64,000 nt of DNA, from NCBI GenBank assembly GCA_025594325.1, contig JANHCV010000014.1, positions 1,116,001 through 1,180,000 of the forward strand, written 5' to 3'. Below, piece by piece: positions 8,092-53,857 of the stretch. Each line of letters opens with the position of its first letter. The stretch's first letter is position 1. The stretch comes from Blastocladiella emersonii ATCC 22665. Lineage: Eukaryota > Fungi > Blastocladiomycota. Under the pieces are notes generated by a model. The model was not told the origin of the DNA. It was given only the letters and a program-made list of their open reading frames with translations, and did no database searches. The position numbers and the translations under genes were made by a program.

Positions 8092-9375
8092 CTACCGGTT
8101 GGCCTTGAACACGAGCGCGGCCAGCGCGATCCACGCGAACCCGGCGAGGTACGCGGTCGCGACCGCCGTGCGTGCCTGGGTGCAGATACTCCCGGCCATC
8201 TTGATCCCCGTCTCCGAAACCCCCACGAGGTCCGCGTCGCCGAGACACGCGATCGAGTACATGTCCGTGTAGTACCCGGTGACCTTATCTTTCCCCTTGG
8301 TCCACGCCATGGACGCGGCGACCACGAGCGCGAGCCCGAGCGCGCCGCCCACCAGCACCTGGATCAGCGCAAACGTCGACTCGCTCATCGCCATGCGCAT
8401 CTTGCCGCGCTTGAAAATCGCGGACGCCGTCGCTGCCGCCGCGAGCACGCTCAGCCCCGCCAGCCACATGACGGGCGACAGCGCAGATGTCGGCACCAGG
8501 TACGCATTGAAGACCGGGAAGTTGGCCACGAACGTCGCGTCCGTCCACGCGTTCCGCGCCGCGAAACTCGTGTAAGCGCCCAGCACGCTCAGCGCGCACG
8601 CCAGTGCCGCCAGACCGAACCGCTGGTTCATCCAGTGCTTCGAGTTGTCGTCGGCCGCTGCCGCAGCGGGGTCCGTGTGGAACGACGCCGCCGTCGCCGT
8701 CAGGTGTGTCGTCGACGCGCCGCCGAGAGTTCCGGACGAGGCGGAGGCGGGTAGTACGGCGGGCGCCTTGTGCTCGAGCGTCGCGGCGGGTGCAGGGGCG
8801 GGCGCGGGAGCGACAGTGGCGGGTGGGCGCGACGAGGACTCGGCGACGAACGGGCGCAGCGTCGCCTGCTGCGGCTGCGGTTGAGGGGCGGGCGCAGGCG
8901 GCGCCTGGTGCGACAGCGTTGGCGGGGCATGGAACTGCTGCTGTTGCTGCTGCTGCTGGTGGTGGCGCAGCGTCGGCGGGCCAGGCGGTGGCGGCGGCGC
9001 GTGCGACCCGTCGTCGTAGACGGTCTCGACGAGGTACTCGTTGGCCGACGAGCCGCCGGCGCCCGGGCGCTTCGAGAACGGGATGATGACCACGTCAGGT
9101 TCGACGGTCGAGGCATGCGCCGAGTACATCTGCGGCTGCTGCGGCGGCGCCGGCTGGTAGTACATCTGCTGCTGCTGCTGAGGGACAGGGTACGGCCCGC
9201 CGGGACCCTGCGGCATCGCCTGCATCGGCTGCTGCTGCTGCTGATAGTACATGAACTGTTGCGGCTGCTGCGGCTGCATCGGCTGCTGCTGCTGGTAATA
9301 CATGGCCTGCTGGAGAGGAGGCGGCCCGCCGCCACCGCCGCCGGTTGGGTTGGATGGGACGTGCTGCTGCGCCAT
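8092..9375 (-). CDS. Gln/Pro-rich N-terminus plus four predicted TM helices (MARVEL-like topology), function unknown
   Basis: Single 427-aa ORF with coding-like codon bias, polyQ tracts (MYYQQQQ) and four hydrophobic segments at the C-terminus. Confidence 0.65.
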   Translation of the reverse strand: MAQQHVPSNPTGGGGGGPPPLQQAMYYQQQQPMQPQQPQQFMYYQQQQQPMQAMPQGPGGPYPVPQQQQQMYYQPAPPQQPQMYSAHASTVEPDVVIIPFSKRPGAGGSSANEYLVETVYDDGSHAPPPPPGPPTLRHHQQQQQQQQFHAPPTLSHQAPPAPAPQPQPQQATLRPFVAESSSRPPATVAPAPAPAPAATLEHKAPAVLPASASSGTLGGASTTHLTATAASFHTDPAAAAADDNSKHWMNQRFGLAALACALSVLGAYTSFAARNAWTDATFVANFPVFNAYLVPTSALSPVMWLAGLSVLAAAATASAIFKRGKMRMAMSESTFALIQVLVGGALGLALVVAASMAWTKGKDKVTGYYTDMYSIACLGDADLVGVSETGIKMAGSICTQARTAVATAYLAGFAWIALAALVFKANR

Positions 9376-10091: not shown

Positions 10092-13000
10092 ATGACCTCG
10101 CAAGCGGTCGAAGGACCCGCTTCCAGCGACGCCCCCGGGCGGATCTGGAAGAAGCTGACCAAGCCCTTCAAGTCCGCCAAACAGCGCATCAAGCACAATC
10201 TTCTTGCCGCCGCCGCTCGCCAGTCGGCGGGCCCTACGCTTGCCCTTCCGCCCGCGCCTTCGCCTCCTGCCCTTCCGCCCAAGACTTTGCCTCGTTCTGC
10301 CCTTCCGCCCGCTGCCGGACCTTCGGCTGCCCTTCCGCCCGCTGCTGGACCTTCGGCTGCTCTTCAGCCCGCTGCTGCACCTTCGGCTGCCCTTCAGCCC
10401 GCTGCTGCACCTGTGCAGGAGGACTCGATTGCCCAGGCGCAGGAGCCAGCCACCCCGACGGAGACCTCGAACAAGCTCGTCGACGACGATGTGGGCCCCA
10501 TTCCTGATCGCGACGACTCTGGAAAGACTGCTCCCAACGCTATCGACCGTGCCTCTAACTTTTTGGATGGTGCTCAAGCTGCGACCAAGTTTTTGGCCAT
10601 GGTTGGCAAGGACATCCCCGTCGCTGGCGCGCTTCTCGCCTGTGTTGATGTGCGTCGACTCGTTCCAATATGCTATTGCTGCTTGACCACTAACCGAACG
10701 TAAAAAATCCACCAGGCAATGGTTGAAGTCGAATGCAAAGCCGGGGATAATGCAGCCGCCATCGAGCAGCTTCGGGACAACGCCATCTTCGCGTTTGACT
10801 TAGCGAAACAGTCCAACGTCACTGACATGTGGTCGGGCGAGAAAATTCTCGCCGAGATGGTCCTGACGCCGCTCTTCTCCGTCATCAAGTCCTGCTTCAC
10901 GCTCATTTCCCATCAGCGCTCAATGACCTGGATCCAACGCCGTGCCCAGGCCTTTGACAATTGCAAGAAAATCAATGAACTGGACAAATCGCTTCAGGAC
11001 TTGCTCGAACGACTTTCGACCTTCATTTCCATCACTCCGCCTGTTCGCAAGCCCATTGACGCCAAGCCGACTCCGGAGGCGAAAAAGTTTTACAAAGAGC
11101 TTTGCGACCACGGTGGCGTCAAGGGCCTAGTCAATGAAAACCCCGAGGCGTTGGAGTGTGTGCAGCGCCTGGCCGGCGATGAGGGGATTGACTTCAACAA
11201 GCAAATGATTGACGACCTCCGCACCGACTTCAACACCGCTTTCGACCGACTTGAGCGCGGCTTCGACATCGTCCTCTCCAAGATCACCGAGCAGGGCAAG
11301 TCCATTGACGAGGCCAAGGCAATGCTGGTTTCTCTTGCCGAGCGTGGTTCCATGTTTACTTCAATCAAGTGCAACGCCATCCGGAAACTCTGGGCTCGAG
11401 CTGGGTGGGGCGCGCGTGCCAAGGTTCGGGACTTTGCTGACGTCCTTGTCGACCACCTACGCGACGAGCTTGACGCGATGCTGCCCGATCCCGACCCAGT
11501 TTTGAAGGCCGATCTCAACCGCCGCATCGCCCATTTTTCTACGTTCCTTTACGGCCTTGACGAGGATCAGGTACGGCGCTGGACGCGGATAGCCTTGCGC
11601 GCCCCATGTTCTAACATTCGACTGCGATAGACCAACACCATCTCGCCAAAGGAAGTCAACTCGTTGTTTGTGGTCGAAGACTGGCCGGTTCTTGACTACT
11701 TCCGCCTCGTCTCGTTTTTCGCTCCGTACACTGAGCACGCCTTGTACGCGCCCGCATGATCTTTCAGAATCCGACCCACCGGCACTAACACATATCCCTC
11801 GCTAGGCTTCACTCGGTCTCGAACTGTATGGGAAATATCCTCAAATCCAGGGTCTTGATCAAACCGACGGGTGAGCTTCGTGTGCTTTTCGTTCAGCTCA
11901 AACAAATTCTTTTCCTCTTGAACCGCGTCGCAAAGCAACAGGCCTGCACACACTCAAACAGCTACGTCGGTTCTGCAGTCGCAGAGGACGCGGATCCTGC
12001 TGTGGGTTCCAAGGCGTTCGAGTGCTCCCCGACTATTCCGCACCGTTTATTCGAGCTGAACATGTTTTCGGACAAGGTTAGCCGCGAACTCAAGTCGTGG
12101 CACTGGAAGGACACCATTCGGTACTTGCAGCCGCGGTTTCGCTCCTTGCACCAGGTCCTTAGTGCGGCTAAGGAGCTTCTCGACACCATTGAACTTTCGC
12201 GTTGTGGCTGGTCGGTGCTTGGCAAAACGCTGCATGAGTTTTATCGCTTTGTTCACGAATGGACTCCAGAGCACTCGTTGGCCCTCCGCGATCTTGTTGA
12301 TGCAGCTTCCGTTTGGTACGGGGATGGAAAGCTCCTTGACGATTCAGACGCGAACGTCTACACCTCCACCCGTGTACGACCTTTTCCGAACACGGCGTGG
12401 CAGCCGCACATTGGCGCAAAGATTCCAGCCCGCGCCGTGGTCGCTGGAATTGTTGGCGATCAACTCTACTACTTTGCTCGGACTGGTGACGGGGCTCCAG
12501 CGATTGTTGCTGCATCAACTGGCCCTCTGAAGCCGTTTCCTTTGCGCGACGGTTCCAAGTGCGATGAGCTCTCATTTGAGTGGCTCGTTTATGTACGTTT
12601 GCTTTTAATTGTTGGCGCTTGACCATTTCGTTCGGGTTCGTTGACCCTGCAGTTGTAGGCCGACCTTCCAAAACCTACCAGATCCGCCGAGTCTCCCGCC
12701 AACCCGACCGCCGACCTTTCTTCCCCCCTAGACCACCCAGGACCCCACATTATCTGGTGGAGTTCGTGGAAACTCGACGTTCCGCCGCCGCCTTCCGCGG
12801 CTCAGGTACGGGGCGCCCTGTGGCATACGATGAACAAATCATTCACTGACATACCTGGCTTCGAAACTTGCACAGATTGGCAGTTTGACGGCGCGTAGCG
12901 GTGGTACTTTCTTTGCTCGGTACCGCCGGGGCATCAACGCATTTCCTGGCGTAGCTTACGTTCGGAACGGCACGGTTCACTTCACATCGCGCAGCTTTGA

Positions 13001-14796
13001 CTCAACGGTGGTGCTCAGCACTGACGTGTCGACAAACCCAAAGGAGCTTCTGCGACCTGACATTACCATTGATTACCTCGTTCCCGTGCACTTTGCAACG
13101 GGTTTTAGTCGAGTGCTTGAATGGAAGACGAAGGAAGCCGCTCGAGCCAAGCCTGAATCCATCAAGAAAAACATGCCTCCTGCTCTGCTTTTTGGGTCGC
13201 CCAACCGCCACGGACATCTTGCCTGGTGCCTTGGAGGCAGCGCGGACGGTGGTAGTGCTGGGGACGACGGACTGCATCTCGGAACTGTTTTTGCTTCTCT
13301 TACCAACGTTGTTGAGTCGGACGCGTACTACGTGGATCCTGCAACTTCGGAACTTGTGACAACGTCGCGTTTTTTGGTGCTTTGCCCGCGCAAGGTGTCC
13401 GATCCGCTTGTGTGGATTCCAGCCGCGACATTTGCTGCCGACCGGTCCCAGCACCACAACGTTGCGCGGCAACTTGTCCAATTTCCAACGGCCCATGGCG
13501 GCTGCACCGTCGTGGCTCGCCAGTACCTCGATGCCAAGTTCAATTCGCCCCTGGGTACGTCAACAGCTGCAGAATTCTGCAGTTATACACCGTGAGCTAA
13601 TTTTCGATTCGTGCCTTCATGCAGGTTCATCTCCGCACACCATGTGTGTCGCGCTCCAACCAGCTTCGCTTTCCGACCCCTCCAACCTTCCCCCAGTCGC
13701 CATTCCAGCGAGCTGTGACGACGGACTTGAGCTTTTGTACCTCATCACGGACCGCAACGGCTTTGTCAAAGCTCTCAACGTCATGGACACGGCCAGTGCT
13801 CAGGGTCATCTTGGAGTCCTCGAATGGCTTCGTGCCAGCAAACTCGAGGCCGATCATTCGAATGCAACCATGGATAAAGCATCCGCAAACAATCGCAGGG
13901 ACGTCCTTGATTGGTGGTTCACGCACAAATCCAAGCTGAAACTCAAGTACTCGAACGAGGCCATGGACGATGCCAGCGGCAACGGTCACACCGAGGTGCT
14001 TGATTGGTGGCTCATGCAACGCGGTGAGCTTGAGCTCAAGCACGGCGGACTCAAGTACTCTGAAATCGCTCTCGAACTTGCTAGCAGGAACGGCAAAATC
14101 GAATCCCTCAAGTGGTGGCTTCGCAATAAGTCAGATCTTGCTTTCCGCTACAACAATCGCGCCATGGACGCGGCAAGTGCAGCGGGCCAAACCGAAGTTC
14201 TTGATTGGTGGTGCGCCCACAGGAGCCAGCTTGATCATGGTCTCAAATTCACCGACTACGCCATCAATGAGGCCAGTGCCCGCAACCACGACCAAGTCCT
14301 TGACTGGTGGTTTGCGCGTTTGAGCGACCCGGACTTGGGTTTCAAGTATTCTGATCGCGCCATTGACGAGGCGAGCAAGCGCGGCCGCATCGAAGCTCTC
14401 AAGTGGTGGTTCGACCACCGCGACAAGCTCAAGCTGCTTTACACTGACAAGGCCATGGACAGTGCCAGCGGATACGGCCATCTTGAGATCCTGGACTTGT
14501 GGCTCGGCTCCAATCTCCCGCTTCGCTACACGGAGTCGGCCATGCACTCTGCTGCCAAGTATGGGCGCATTTCCGTCCTCAATTGGTGGCGGCAGTCGGG
14601 GCTCAAGCTCAAGTTCGCAGCGACCGAGCTTCAAAACTCGTCGTCCATGTCCGTCCGCAGATGGTACGCCAAGCACCTTGCGGAGCAACCTCAGCCAGAG
14701 GACCCTGCCGTCGACTACTTTACGTCCCGCGGCCGCAAGTGGCTGGCCAGTCGCAGCAACTCGAGTTACAGCGGGCCCAGTCGCTGGCGGACCTAG
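10092..14796 (+). CDS. ~1430-aa multidomain protein: Pro/Ala repeats, MLKL-NTD-like helical bundle, EF-hand, DM9-like repeats and 9 ankyrin-like repeats
   Basis: Exons 10092-10649, 10716-11570, 11631-11725, 11806-12592, 12659-12805, 12876-13554 and 13625-14796 are all GT..AG and phase-compatible (4293 nt, a multiple of 3). EF loop DEDQTNTISPKE spans a splice junction. Nine AMDxASxxGxxxVLDWW units. Confidence 0.7.
10291..10410 (+). repeat. Coding minisatellite, 4 x 30 bp (SAALPPAAGP)
   Basis: cttcggctgcccttccgcccgctgctggac-like units start at 10291, 10321, 10351 and 10381. Confidence 0.9.
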
Positions 14797-50455: not shown

Positions 50456-50885
50456 GTTCGCCAGCTGGGGGAGAGAGCAACTGTCCAGCAGCAACCTCCA
50501 GCTCAGCGTTCAGCACGAAAGGTGTGGCGCTGACCACGCTGTGGCAACGTGGGCGCACGGCAGAAATAGTCAGGCCGTGGGCCGCGTGGGCCATCACGGC
50601 GGGCATCAGCGTTGTCTCGCGATCCGCCAGAGCAAACCGCGATGCCCACCCACGCCCTCGGTTCCTCCCTCCCTCCCCCCTCCCCTCGCCTTGTTTGCCG
50701 CCACACAAAACGCCCGCCTCGCCCGCAACTCGTCCTCTCTCCCTTGGCCGTCTGCGTTCTGCCCCGCGGATCTCCAACGTAGGTGCTGAGCCCTCTTGTA
50801 TCGCGCGCACTCCGTGGTACTCACCACCGATCTGCAACGCACTCCCTTCTTCGTCCGTTCGCTTCATGCTTGCCGTCTAGACCAC

Positions 50886-53857
50886 ATGCCTCCTCCTCGT
50901 CCGCCTTCGCTGAAGCGGCTCGCCCTCTTTTGCGCGCTGATCGCTCTCATCGGCTCGCTTCACGTCATCCGAGCTGGTCGACCTGTGTATGATGGCCGCA
51001 ACCTGCTCAACCTGGTCGGCGGCGAGATCGCCGACGAGGGCAGCATGTTTCTGTGGAGCATCCGCCAAGGCGCGAACGGAATCGGCGACGGCTTACTTTT
51101 CAGCCCGCTTTCTGCGCTCTCGTTCTTCTACACGATTTTTGCCTGCCAAGATTACTCGGCGTTCAAGGGCGTGAAGCTTACGCTCACTGCTCCTGCTGGG
51201 TCGAACTTTCAGGTCACTATCCAAGACGCTGGCGTTGGATGCCAGGGTAAAGGCGCTAGTTACTCGAAGCGCACCGACTCTCTCATCTACTTCACTGGGC
51301 AGGGCCCTCAAGAGCTGTTTATCAGCTTTGACTATTACTCGATTTTCAATCCCTCGCGGACCAAGGCTTTAATCTTCTCTGGCTTCACCAATCCTCTCGA
51401 GCAGTTCATCCTGCATCGCATCGAGTTTGACGACGGCCCGCCCGCTCCCCAAATTTGTCCTCGGTACGTTTCTCTGGCCGTTTTGCTCCCGTCAGACGCG
51501 TTCTCACGTTCGGCGTTCATCCTTAGCTTTGACGAATCTCCTGTTTTCGAGTCGTTCAGCACGCTCGATGCGTGGGTCGACGATTCGCAGGCTAACGGGG
51601 GCCCGAACAACTACTTCATCGACAACAAGTCTTCGCTCGTTTTCTCTGTCAACCCGACTGCGTCTGTCCGGCCTAAACTAAAGCTTAAAGACCGCCGCTT
51701 TGTTGGCCCTGGTCGCCACGAATGGCGTGTCTACACGCCGATGCGTGAGCCGGGACAGGTCACCAGTATTGGAGCATTCCTGTGTACGTATTTCCTTCGC
51801 GTCGATTCCGAGATTCGTGTGCCTCCGCGTGCCGCGAAGTAACACCGACATGGCTATCCTACCACCAATTATGGTTGTGATCACGATCATGATTGTAATC
51901 AGGATGGGCTAACATGTTACGACAACTCCCTGAGTAAGTTTCGAATCTTGACTAACACAAAACCCCACCATCCAACTCCTGCAATCCCTCCATCATCGTC
52001 TGCATCAATCATTCTCCCTCTACTCTCTTCTTTCGATCAGACTTCGACGATTACCACGAGGTCGACTTTGAAATTGGTTACGGCGCTGCGGACTTGCGCG
52101 AGAAACTTGGCGCCCGTGATCATCAACCTGTGGCCTACATGACGACTCAGGCAACTGACGGGGGCTCCTGGATTACCCTGGACGGAACTCAAGTTCTCAT
52201 CGACGGAAACTCCTGGCACGACTTGGCCATTGATCTGGATCTCGACAAAACTGGAACTCTTTTCATTGTGAGTTGGTGGATTGACGGCACTCGTGTCCAG
52301 CGTTCTGGCCAATCATGGGGCCCGGCCAACATTGGAGCTGGCTTCACCGCTCACGTTTCCCAGGAAAACTTGTGGTGGATGGGCCTTGGTCCTGGCGAGA
52401 TCTCGAGACCTGCCCAGAAACCAGTCGATGCCAATGCTCAGCCTGCCATGGCAGTCTTTGACACCTACCGCTTTACGCCCACCGCTGGATGTGGGGGAGA
52501 TGGGCGTGGTAAACCTGACCCTATCCCTGCCGATTCGAGCTTCACTCCTGCTGCGCCCACTTCCGGCGCTCGTAAATGCAACGGTCTGGCTCAAATCTGC
52601 AACAAGGAGCTTCACAAAGTCGTTTTTCCTGGTGCACACAACGCTGGGACTGATGACCTGACTTGCCGGTACTTCGTTGAAACTGACTGCGGGATTGGTG
52701 AAGCACGCACAACTAATGCCACTTCTCACTTGAGGCGGCTACCACGCCGCGGTGCTCCTCAACGCAACGCCACCACCGACCTTGCGCACGTTGATGGATC
52801 AGCTCTTCCCAACAATAACCGAACTTCCACAGCAGCCCCCATGGGTCCCCTTCCGCCCCCGCCACCGCCGTGTAACCCGTTGAAGCCCATGTCAACGTGT
52901 TACACCGGAATTTATCCAATCCAGTGCTTGTTTGGGAATCAAGACGCGCCGGTGTCTGCTTTGCTCGACCGTGGAGTCAGATGGTTTGACCTTGACTTTT
53001 GCGGTAATCGCCTGGACAATCCAGGGGTGATTTCCATTTGCCACAAGGCCGACGGTGTTGGCGGTGTCGCTTACGGCCCAACGGCTGCGGATTTGCTTGG
53101 CGAGGTTCATATAACTGCGTCGCTCGTTCCATTTTCCGGCCACTAACCCAAACATCTACTCCAAACTGCAGTTGAGTCGCTGGCTCAGACGCCCGAGCAA
53201 TCGCAACGAGCTTGTCGTGCTTTTCCTTTCTGATCTCAACAACGGCATGAACGATGCGAAGGACGAGCTCGTTAAGTTGATCCGCACACAGCTTGGTCTC
53301 CTGCTTTACTCGGGCACGAACGCGGTGAAGACGAAGGTTAGTACGCTTCTCAACGACGGTCCGCGCGTCATTTTGACCGGGAAGTTTCCGCCCAGTGACT
53401 TGTCTGCGTCGCTTCAGAGTTTCTATCACGACGTACGGAGTATCCCGACGGCTTATTGTGGACGATCTCTAACCACCCTTGACCTCGATTGCTAGCTCAA
53501 ACTCATCGACACGTACAATTCGAAAACCACGCTTCCGTCTGGTGAACTGATCAAGCTAGCGTGTGAAACCGCGAAGGCGAATGATCAGCGGGTCATCCTC
53601 TCTCTGATGGGCGCTCCCAACTTTGTTACCGTTGTCGGAGGCAAGTGCAACTCCGTCCTGCAGCAGCTCGTAAGATTTTTGGACTAGCTGTCAGATTCTA
53701 CGTGCTAACTTTCGTTGCTCGTCTCATGTAGGTCGATATCCCTGAGCTCCTCCGCCATATGCCGCGGGATTGTCCTGTCCAGACCATCCTGAAGGACTTT
53801 GCTCGAGATTCCAATGGCATGTTCAGGTTCGCGGAGTATCGCAACATGGCGGAGTAA
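50886..53857 (+). CDS. Secreted fusion protein: CBM-like beta-sandwich, GH16-like hydrolase and PI-PLC X-like phosphodiesterase
   Basis: Signal peptide. WRVYTP..SIGAFL|YFDDYHEVDFEIGYG (ExDxE) across intron 51784-52040. CNGLAQIC..VFPGAHNAG, NQDAPVSALLDRGVRWFDLD and WLRRPSNRNELVVLFL. The 3' exons are approximate. Confidence 0.65.

Follow-up and report, generated by a model that had tools for sequence, protein, structure and literature searches.

Here we describe a candidate gene in the genome of the zoosporic, early-diverging fungus Blastocladiella emersonii ATCC 22665 (assembly GCA_025594325.1, contig JANHCV010000014.1), which lies at positions 10092-14796 on the + strand of the 64,000-nucleotide stretch of DNA that was analysed (hereafter the window, to whose coordinates and + strand all features below refer unless otherwise stated). 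Its predicted protein of 1436 amino acids joins an MLKL-type four-helix bundle directly to an EF-hand pair, a DM9/MFP2-like beta region and an array of nine ankyrin repeats, an architecture that is a variant on known executioner bundles. Judged by its sequence, the candidate is a real, intact gene. The function that we tentatively favour, as a good possibility falling short of a probability, is that of a cytosolic, nucleotide-independent sensor-executioner, MLKL-like and controlled by Ca2+ and ligand. The original prediction for this DNA had named the bundle, a canonical EF loop, DM9-like repeats and a nine-repeat ankyrin array, and had claimed that NACHT and NB-ARC domains are lacking; with the exception of the DM9-like repeats, for which the outcome is mixed, these claims hold up on the evidence given below, and the peptide strings quoted in support of them are all present in the translation.

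Seven exons (10092-10649, 10716-11570, 11631-11743, 11806-12592, 12659-12805, 12876-13554 and 13625-14796) join into a coding sequence of 4311 nucleotides with zero internal stops. All of the junctions are in phase and have consensus splice sites, the six intervening introns (10650-10715, 11571-11630, 11744-11805, 12593-12658, 12806-12875 and 13555-13624; 60-70 nucleotides each) carrying GTRCGY donors, CTAAC, CTGAC or CTAAT branch sites and YAG acceptors. Chance is ruled out as the origin of a 1436-codon frame, since the remaining five frames over the same span are full of stops (27-49 per ~1570 codons, or one every 32-58 codons). Independent DNA contigs are identical to the window over the 4.9 kb, while a deletion of 1 nucleotide at position 10702, in the non-coding A-run of intron 1, is present in one of four DNA runs made from a single sample. 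Moreover, the paralogue P0010 (KAI9179534, 1307 amino acids) is collinear with residues 142-1400 at 40% identity, and five of the six candidate introns recur at matching positions in its gene (186/187, 471/472, 508/509, 771/772 and 820/821). The exon that is hardest to recognise, exon 5, is kept in P0014, P0003, P0007 and the Sorochytrium proteins. The annotated model of P0010 itself has a 237-nucleotide intron (L001 12364-12600) that holds a stretch 52% identical to exon 5 (tblastn, 12446-12532), and the exon 5 equivalent was probably skipped in that GenBank model. Thus the intact frame, the collinear paralogue and the shared intron positions uphold the seven-exon, single-gene architecture of ~1430 amino acids that had been proposed.

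The MLKL_N-type four-helix bundle occupies residues ~158-297 (10563..11046, cut by intron 1), has a hydrophobic first helix at residues 167-185 (by hydropathy), and is recognised through homologues and a family profile. The homologues P0006, P0007 and P0008 score 32.9, 29.2 and 31.2 bits against Pfam MLKL_N (PF22215), above the cut-off of 27, with matches sitting at the position homologous to the bundle of the candidate, and a profile built from 12 family sequences matches the solved human and mouse MLKL N-domains (E=6e-5). Structure models were made from contiguous paralogue segments, standing in for the spliced 1436-amino acid protein. In the model of the N-terminal segment the bundle region is helical, at a predicted local distance difference test score (pLDDT) of 60-80, and alignment of this predicted bundle with VIA ranks the CC and CC-R bundles of resistosomes highest, with Z scores of 11.2 to NRC3, 10.2 to ZAR1 and 8.8 to the CC-R domain of NRG1.1, values that generic bundles reach alike; Foldseek returned no match below E=1 for the same model (pLDDT 65 over the segment). 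Ahead of the bundle, residues 1-144 (10092..10523) form an extension that begins with basic residues and contains a low-complexity stretch rich in Pro and Ala, where TRF reports a tandem repeat (10297-10412; 30 nucleotides, 3.9 copies, 94% matches) encoding a Pro/Ala-rich decapeptide. This extension is not conserved in P0010, whose alignment begins at residue 142.

Downstream of the bundle, a conserved helical linker (residues ~298-405; 11047..11372) carries HGG and QGKSIDEAKAML...ERGS motifs in the family alignment; it is modelled as helical, at low confidence, in the paralogue, and is brace-like by position only. The EF-hand pair that follows (residues ~406-483; 11373..11664) is indicated by a PROSITE pattern, the family alignment and the model. 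Its non-canonical loop lies within a conserved RAGWGARAKVRDF motif, in the invariant RAGWGAR, and its canonical loop DEDQTNTISPKE comprises residues 468-479, encoded by nucleotides 11559-11570 and 11631-11654 across intron 2, so that DEDQ and TNTISPKE fall on opposite sides of the exon 2/3 junction. The loop sequence DEDQTNTISPKEV is an exact match to PROSITE PS00018, any match to which arose in 29 of 5000 shuffles of the protein (0.6%), and ligand positions 1, 3, 5 and 12 are kept in all family members that reach the loop, across four genera. In the paralogue the pair is modelled at pLDDT 80-90, with the loop flanked by helices and two short beta bridges linking the loops. Matches to the PDB with the family profile at these positions are weak (E 0.06-1) and exclusively to EF-hands, and a weak Pfam EF-hand_5 match is found in P0004 (E=0.0047).

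At the other end of the protein, nine ankyrin repeats with an AMDxAS..VLDWW signature extend over residues 1092-1379 (13759..14622) and are followed by a tail of 57 residues. These are matched by Pfam Ank_4 (E=7.8e-19) and Ank_2 (E=3.2e-6), and ankyrin families are the only ones that Pfam finds on the candidate's own pieces. Searches with Pfam yielded no NACHT, NB-ARC or other nucleoside triphosphatase (NTPase) domain on any piece of the candidate or on any homologue. The sole string resembling a Walker A motif, GWSVLGKT at residue 643, lies in a region predicted to be a helical bundle and is not conserved in the family, and an NTPase identity was consequently rejected.

The identity of the region between the EF-hands and the ankyrin array is less clear-cut. 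A helical bundle at residues ~495-684 (11700..12329, cut by intron 3) was recognised in the paralogue model; it has no Pfam match, and its alignments with VIA are generic (THATCH and talin R13, Z 10-11.6). Beyond it lies the DM9/MFP2-like beta region (residues ~700-1046; 12377..13551, cut by introns 4 and 5), which was examined with Foldseek, VIA and ESM and whose first repeat covers residues ~700-771, the best-modelled units being those at residues ~800-993. Foldseek comparison of the beta-region paralogue model (pLDDT 55) with the PDB recovered, as its leading matches, MFP2 (8e-6), MFP2b (1.4e-4), DM9CP (0.058) and CGL1 (0.095), and comparison of this same low-confidence model (pLDDT 55) with the AFDB clusters recovered DUF3421 (2e-4); among Swiss-Prot structures it matched the N-terminus of natterin-3 (probability 0.77), and VIA-align gave Z scores of 7.6 and 6.9 (the latter over 64 residues, with a root-mean-square deviation of 2.3). 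ESM features of residues 694-771 of the candidate are nearest to DM9 clusters (0.86-0.87, with 169-182 of 256 features shared), and those of exon 6 are nearest to generic small beta barrels (<0.8). We therefore read the beta region, from modelled structure and language-model features, as a probable divergent member of the DM9/MFP2 fold family. Several other searches were negative: Pfam DM9 (PF11901/DUF3421) has no match at E<=1 on the candidate pieces, nor on ten family segments with the threshold relaxed to E<=10, a profile search of the PDB with the beta region gave 0 matches, the ESM Atlas shape search gave no informative match, and a word-index search with the beta-region alignment revealed no short stand-alone relatives. 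Comparisons among the four putative beta repeats with hhalign were not significant (R12 versus R34, P=0.005). Finally, the mannose site of CGL1 is formed by Asp, Lys and Glu (PMC4932603), and inspection by eye, as opposed to residue-level alignment, places a Lys at the expected position only in P0007. As this Lys looks unconserved, sugar binding is not implied. The DM9-like repeats of the original prediction consequently stand as regards fold matches and language-model features, and fail as regards a recognisable DM9 family match and, apparently, the mannose-site Lys.

The family to which the candidate belongs comprises ~15 proteins, and those with a named source all belong to Blastocladiomycota. 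When 1.84 billion representatives were scanned exhaustively with HMMER, exon 2 matched nine, of which eight belong to Blastocladiella emersonii, B. britannica, Catenaria anguillulae and Sorochytrium milnesiophthora and one comes from a sequencing run. No Agaricomycete is among these nine, which leaves unsupported the link to a family expanded in Agaricomycetes that had been suggested earlier, and other flagellated fungi are likewise without family members in this search; a scan of a prokaryote-only contig collection with exon 2 found no relative. There are at least four copies in B. emersonii: the candidate gene, P0010, P0001 plus P0014, and P0007, which is without ankyrin repeats. The nearest paralogue of the candidate is 40-47% identical to it, and no synteny was seen between the candidate locus and that of P0010. 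P0001 and P0014 correspond to a paralogue that GenBank divides into H9P43_004809 (422 amino acids; L003 4594-5927) and H9P43_004808 (924 amino acids; L003 6001-9045), which are 73 nucleotides apart and jointly collinear with the family; because the boundary between the two calls coincides exactly with intron 2, within the EF loop, we regard them as a single gene and the division as an annotation artefact.

Members of the family differ in their ankyrin content, which ranges from none, through nine repeats, to an array of ~850 amino acids in the Sorochytrium members. The Catenaria members are short, with nothing beyond the bundle and the EF-hand except a brief tail, and the bundle plus EF-hand is on this account the conserved core of the family, while, as far as the sequences go, the repeat modules are its variable part. 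A similar division appears in substitution rates between two recent paralogues of the family (synonymous divergence, dS, 0.15-0.33): the ratio of non-synonymous to synonymous divergence (dN/dS) is 0.14 for the bundle-plus-EF module (dN 0.021) and 0.43 for the rest of the protein (dN 0.142), with a maximum of 0.76 among 70-codon windows in its beta and ankyrin parts. These values indicate that both of the recent paralogues are functional genes, and a conserved, effector-like half combined with a faster-evolving repeat half would fit a receptor.

By analogy with MLKL, HeLo and CC-R systems and with fusions of lectins to pore formers (PMC12881547, PMC4932603), we infer a possible immune or cell-death role for the candidate. 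Under the sensor-executioner reading, the C-terminal binding modules together with the EF-hand pair would keep the bundle inactive in the resting state, much as the pseudokinase does in MLKL. The bundle would then be released when a glycan or protein ligand is bound by the DM9-like or ankyrin part, when Ca2+ rises at the EF-hand, or through both events together; once free, it would oligomerise on membranes and permeabilise them, leading to regulated cell death or to a related response in defence or allorecognition. We favour this reading because the bundle is homologous to MLKL N-domains and the EF ligand positions are conserved, because the repeat part evolves faster than the bundle-EF module and the architecture varies among members, because sequence prediction finds neither a signal peptide nor a strong transmembrane segment in the candidate protein, and because there are precedents in the literature. 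In MLKL the bundle is restrained by a C-terminal regulator, and fungal receptors pair HeLo-type domains with ankyrin sensors (PMC12881547); pore formers occur fused to DM9/natterin lectins (PMC4932603); and HET-B of Podospora, cited in PMC12881547, combines a HET domain with a lectin fold, and no NTPase, in allorecognition.

Several observations weigh against this reading. The connection of the candidate to MLKL is transitive, running via homologues and the family profile, and the candidate's own exon-2 piece, which lacks helix 1, has no Pfam MLKL_N match at E<=1. Both of the structure models are of low confidence (pLDDT 65 for the N-terminal segment and 55 for the beta-region segment). The ankyrin units, of 29-36 residues with repeat-core DNA identity of 38-67%, are without recent concerted evolution, unlike the sensors of many fungal NOD-like receptors (NLRs), and dN/dS is below 1 in all windows of the recent paralogue pair, such that positive selection is not shown. 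The GenBank record for the assembly has no called gene at 10092-14796, and the listed sequencing runs are four DNA runs of one sample and none of RNA, so that the splice pattern rests on paralogue comparison. Lastly, the GC content at third codon positions (GC3) is low in the candidate gene, which suggests weak expression or atypical evolution.

Among the alternatives, the one that survives best is that the candidate is a non-lethal, Ca2+-regulated scaffold of membrane or cytoskeleton, in which the bundle does no more than tether the protein to membranes, while partners from the cytoskeleton or the trafficking machinery are bound by the MFP2-like and ankyrin modules; zoospore formation, motility or membrane repair are examples of processes that it might serve. 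We consider this possible, if doubtful. The best structural match of the beta region is to MFP2, a nematode sperm motility protein and no lectin, the Lys of the DM9 mannose site (as defined in PMC4932603) looks unconserved when aligned by eye, all parts of the protein are under purifying selection, and ankyrin repeats and EF-hands are generic modules of scaffolds and regulators. Against this, all characterised relatives of MLKL, HeLo and CC-R bundles permeabilise membranes in death or immunity (PMC12881547), and a small, architecturally variable family confined to a single lineage would be unusual for a core cell-biology component.

It is improbable, in our estimation, that the candidate is an unexpressed or decaying paralogue under relaxed constraint, only the annotated copies being functional. 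The missing gene call and the lack of any listed RNA run for the locus would agree with a silent copy, as would its composition, with a GC content of about 0.575 (0.56-0.59) versus 0.65-0.67 for the P0010 gene and a GC3 of 0.66 versus 0.88 for a neighbouring gene. Yet the gene has kept 1436 open codons and every one of its 12 splice signals in spite of only 40-47% identity to the nearest paralogue, in a span whose other frames meet a stop every 32-58 codons, and all conserved family motifs are retained, EF loop ligands included. The candidate is unannotated because its locus falls inside a 7.4-kb gap in the GenBank gene calls, which runs from a single-exon neighbour (8095-9375, minus strand) to a ZZ/EF-hand gene; the open reading frames of the GenBank locus agree with those in the window. 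To produce the published B. emersonii annotation, funannotate was run with ab initio predictors, and neither RNA-seq nor a transcriptome comes up in the paper (PMC9730499). Genes of atypical composition can escape predictors of this type, which is plausibly why the candidate was missed. Other genes of atypical composition in the B. emersonii genome may accordingly be undercounted.

That the locus represents two or more genes wrongly joined, such as a bundle-EF gene and a repeat gene, is very improbable, for although GenBank splits one paralogue into H9P43_004809 and H9P43_004808 and Catenaria has short bundle-EF proteins, that split has the marks of an annotation artefact as described above, the annotations give P0010, P0003, P0007 and four Sorochytrium proteins each as one collinear chain, and each junction of the candidate is in phase with consensus splice sites.

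Comparison with known systems places the candidate closest to familiar executioners in its N-terminal half. With MLKL and plant MLKL-like proteins it shares a homologous N-terminal bundle followed by a helical linker and a C-terminal regulatory part, and the absence of an NTPase. It differs from MLKL in having no pseudokinase, in the place of which stand the EF-hand pair, the helical bundle and the DM9/MFP2-like and ankyrin repeats, in carrying a disordered extension of ~150 residues before the bundle, and in having no known kinase partner. HeLo and HeLo-like proteins (HET-S, HELLP), HeLo-NLRs and the plant CC-R and CC NLRs (NRG1, ZAR1, NRC) possess an executioner bundle of the same superfamily, joined, as is proposed for the candidate, to repeat sensors in one chain or pathway, and ankyrin repeats are common as sensors of fungal NLRs. 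The candidate is, however, without the NACHT/NB-ARC oligomerisation switch of these receptors, and in contrast to HeLo proteins its family matches Pfam MLKL_N and not HeLo, in a host that is an early-diverging zoosporic fungus and not a Dikaryon. In the searched library, the one paper that names both Blastocladiomycota and MLKL reports homologues of the MLKL family only in Glomeromycotina (PMC8778642).

In its C-terminal half, the candidate probably shares a beta-repeat fold family, on the evidence of Foldseek, VIA and language-model features, with the DM9/natterin lectins (oyster CGL1 and DM9CP, and fish natterins) and nematode MFP2, and natterins likewise couple a DM9-type module to a pore-forming module. 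The putative pore-forming partner in the candidate is nevertheless a helical bundle rather than an aerolysin module, and the protein appears to be cytosolic rather than secreted; it further departs from DM9 lectins in the lack of a Pfam DM9 match at E<=10 and in the seemingly unconserved mannose-binding Lys. In Podospora HET-B, too, a death-associated domain of a fungus is fused directly to a recognition domain of lectin fold, and an NTPase is lacking (cited in PMC12881547). The likeness is one of architecture, as the death domain of HET-B is HET/TIR-like rather than an MLKL bundle, and HET-B has neither an EF-hand nor an ankyrin array. In the same library, the one paper naming both MLKL and DM9 concerned a general method for receptor prediction and did not suggest the architecture of the candidate.

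With respect to its surroundings, the candidate gene corresponds to L002 4580-9284 on the minus strand. A neighbouring gene of 903 amino acids (1-1944 of the window, and L002 17432-20271) encodes a kinase (PK_Tyr_Ser-Thr, 5.6e-48) followed by leucine-rich repeats (LRR_6, 2.6e-50); an MLKL-like N-terminus was not confirmed in this protein by Pfam at E<=0.01 on the open reading frame pieces tested. A second low-GC island, at 50.8-54.1 kb, contains two open reading frames of ~350 amino acids on the + strand (50796-51842 and 52094-53146), both without a Pfam match. A paralogue of the candidate in this island was excluded, as tblastn shows no similarity to the candidate protein.

Bundles of the MLKL, HeLo and CC-R types serve as the common executioners in necroptosis, in fungal incompatibility and in plant resistosomes, and the pores that they form conduct Ca2+. 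To our knowledge, release of the bundle depends in every studied case on a kinase, on an amyloid template or on an NTPase switch. It is conceivable, though we think it rather unlikely, that the candidate represents the first one-chain, nucleotide-independent, Ca2+-gated immune sensor-executioner, in which an MLKL-type bundle is placed under EF-hand and lectin-like/ankyrin control in a manner specific to Blastocladiomycota. If true, EF-hands combined with binding repeats would be another way of triggering MLKL/HeLo/CC-R bundles, and Ca2+ would be directly tied to control of the bundle. Regulated-cell-death machinery would then extend to zoosporic fungi, and Blastocladiomycota would possess a branch of their own in which neither kinases nor the oligomerisation of NLRs are needed.

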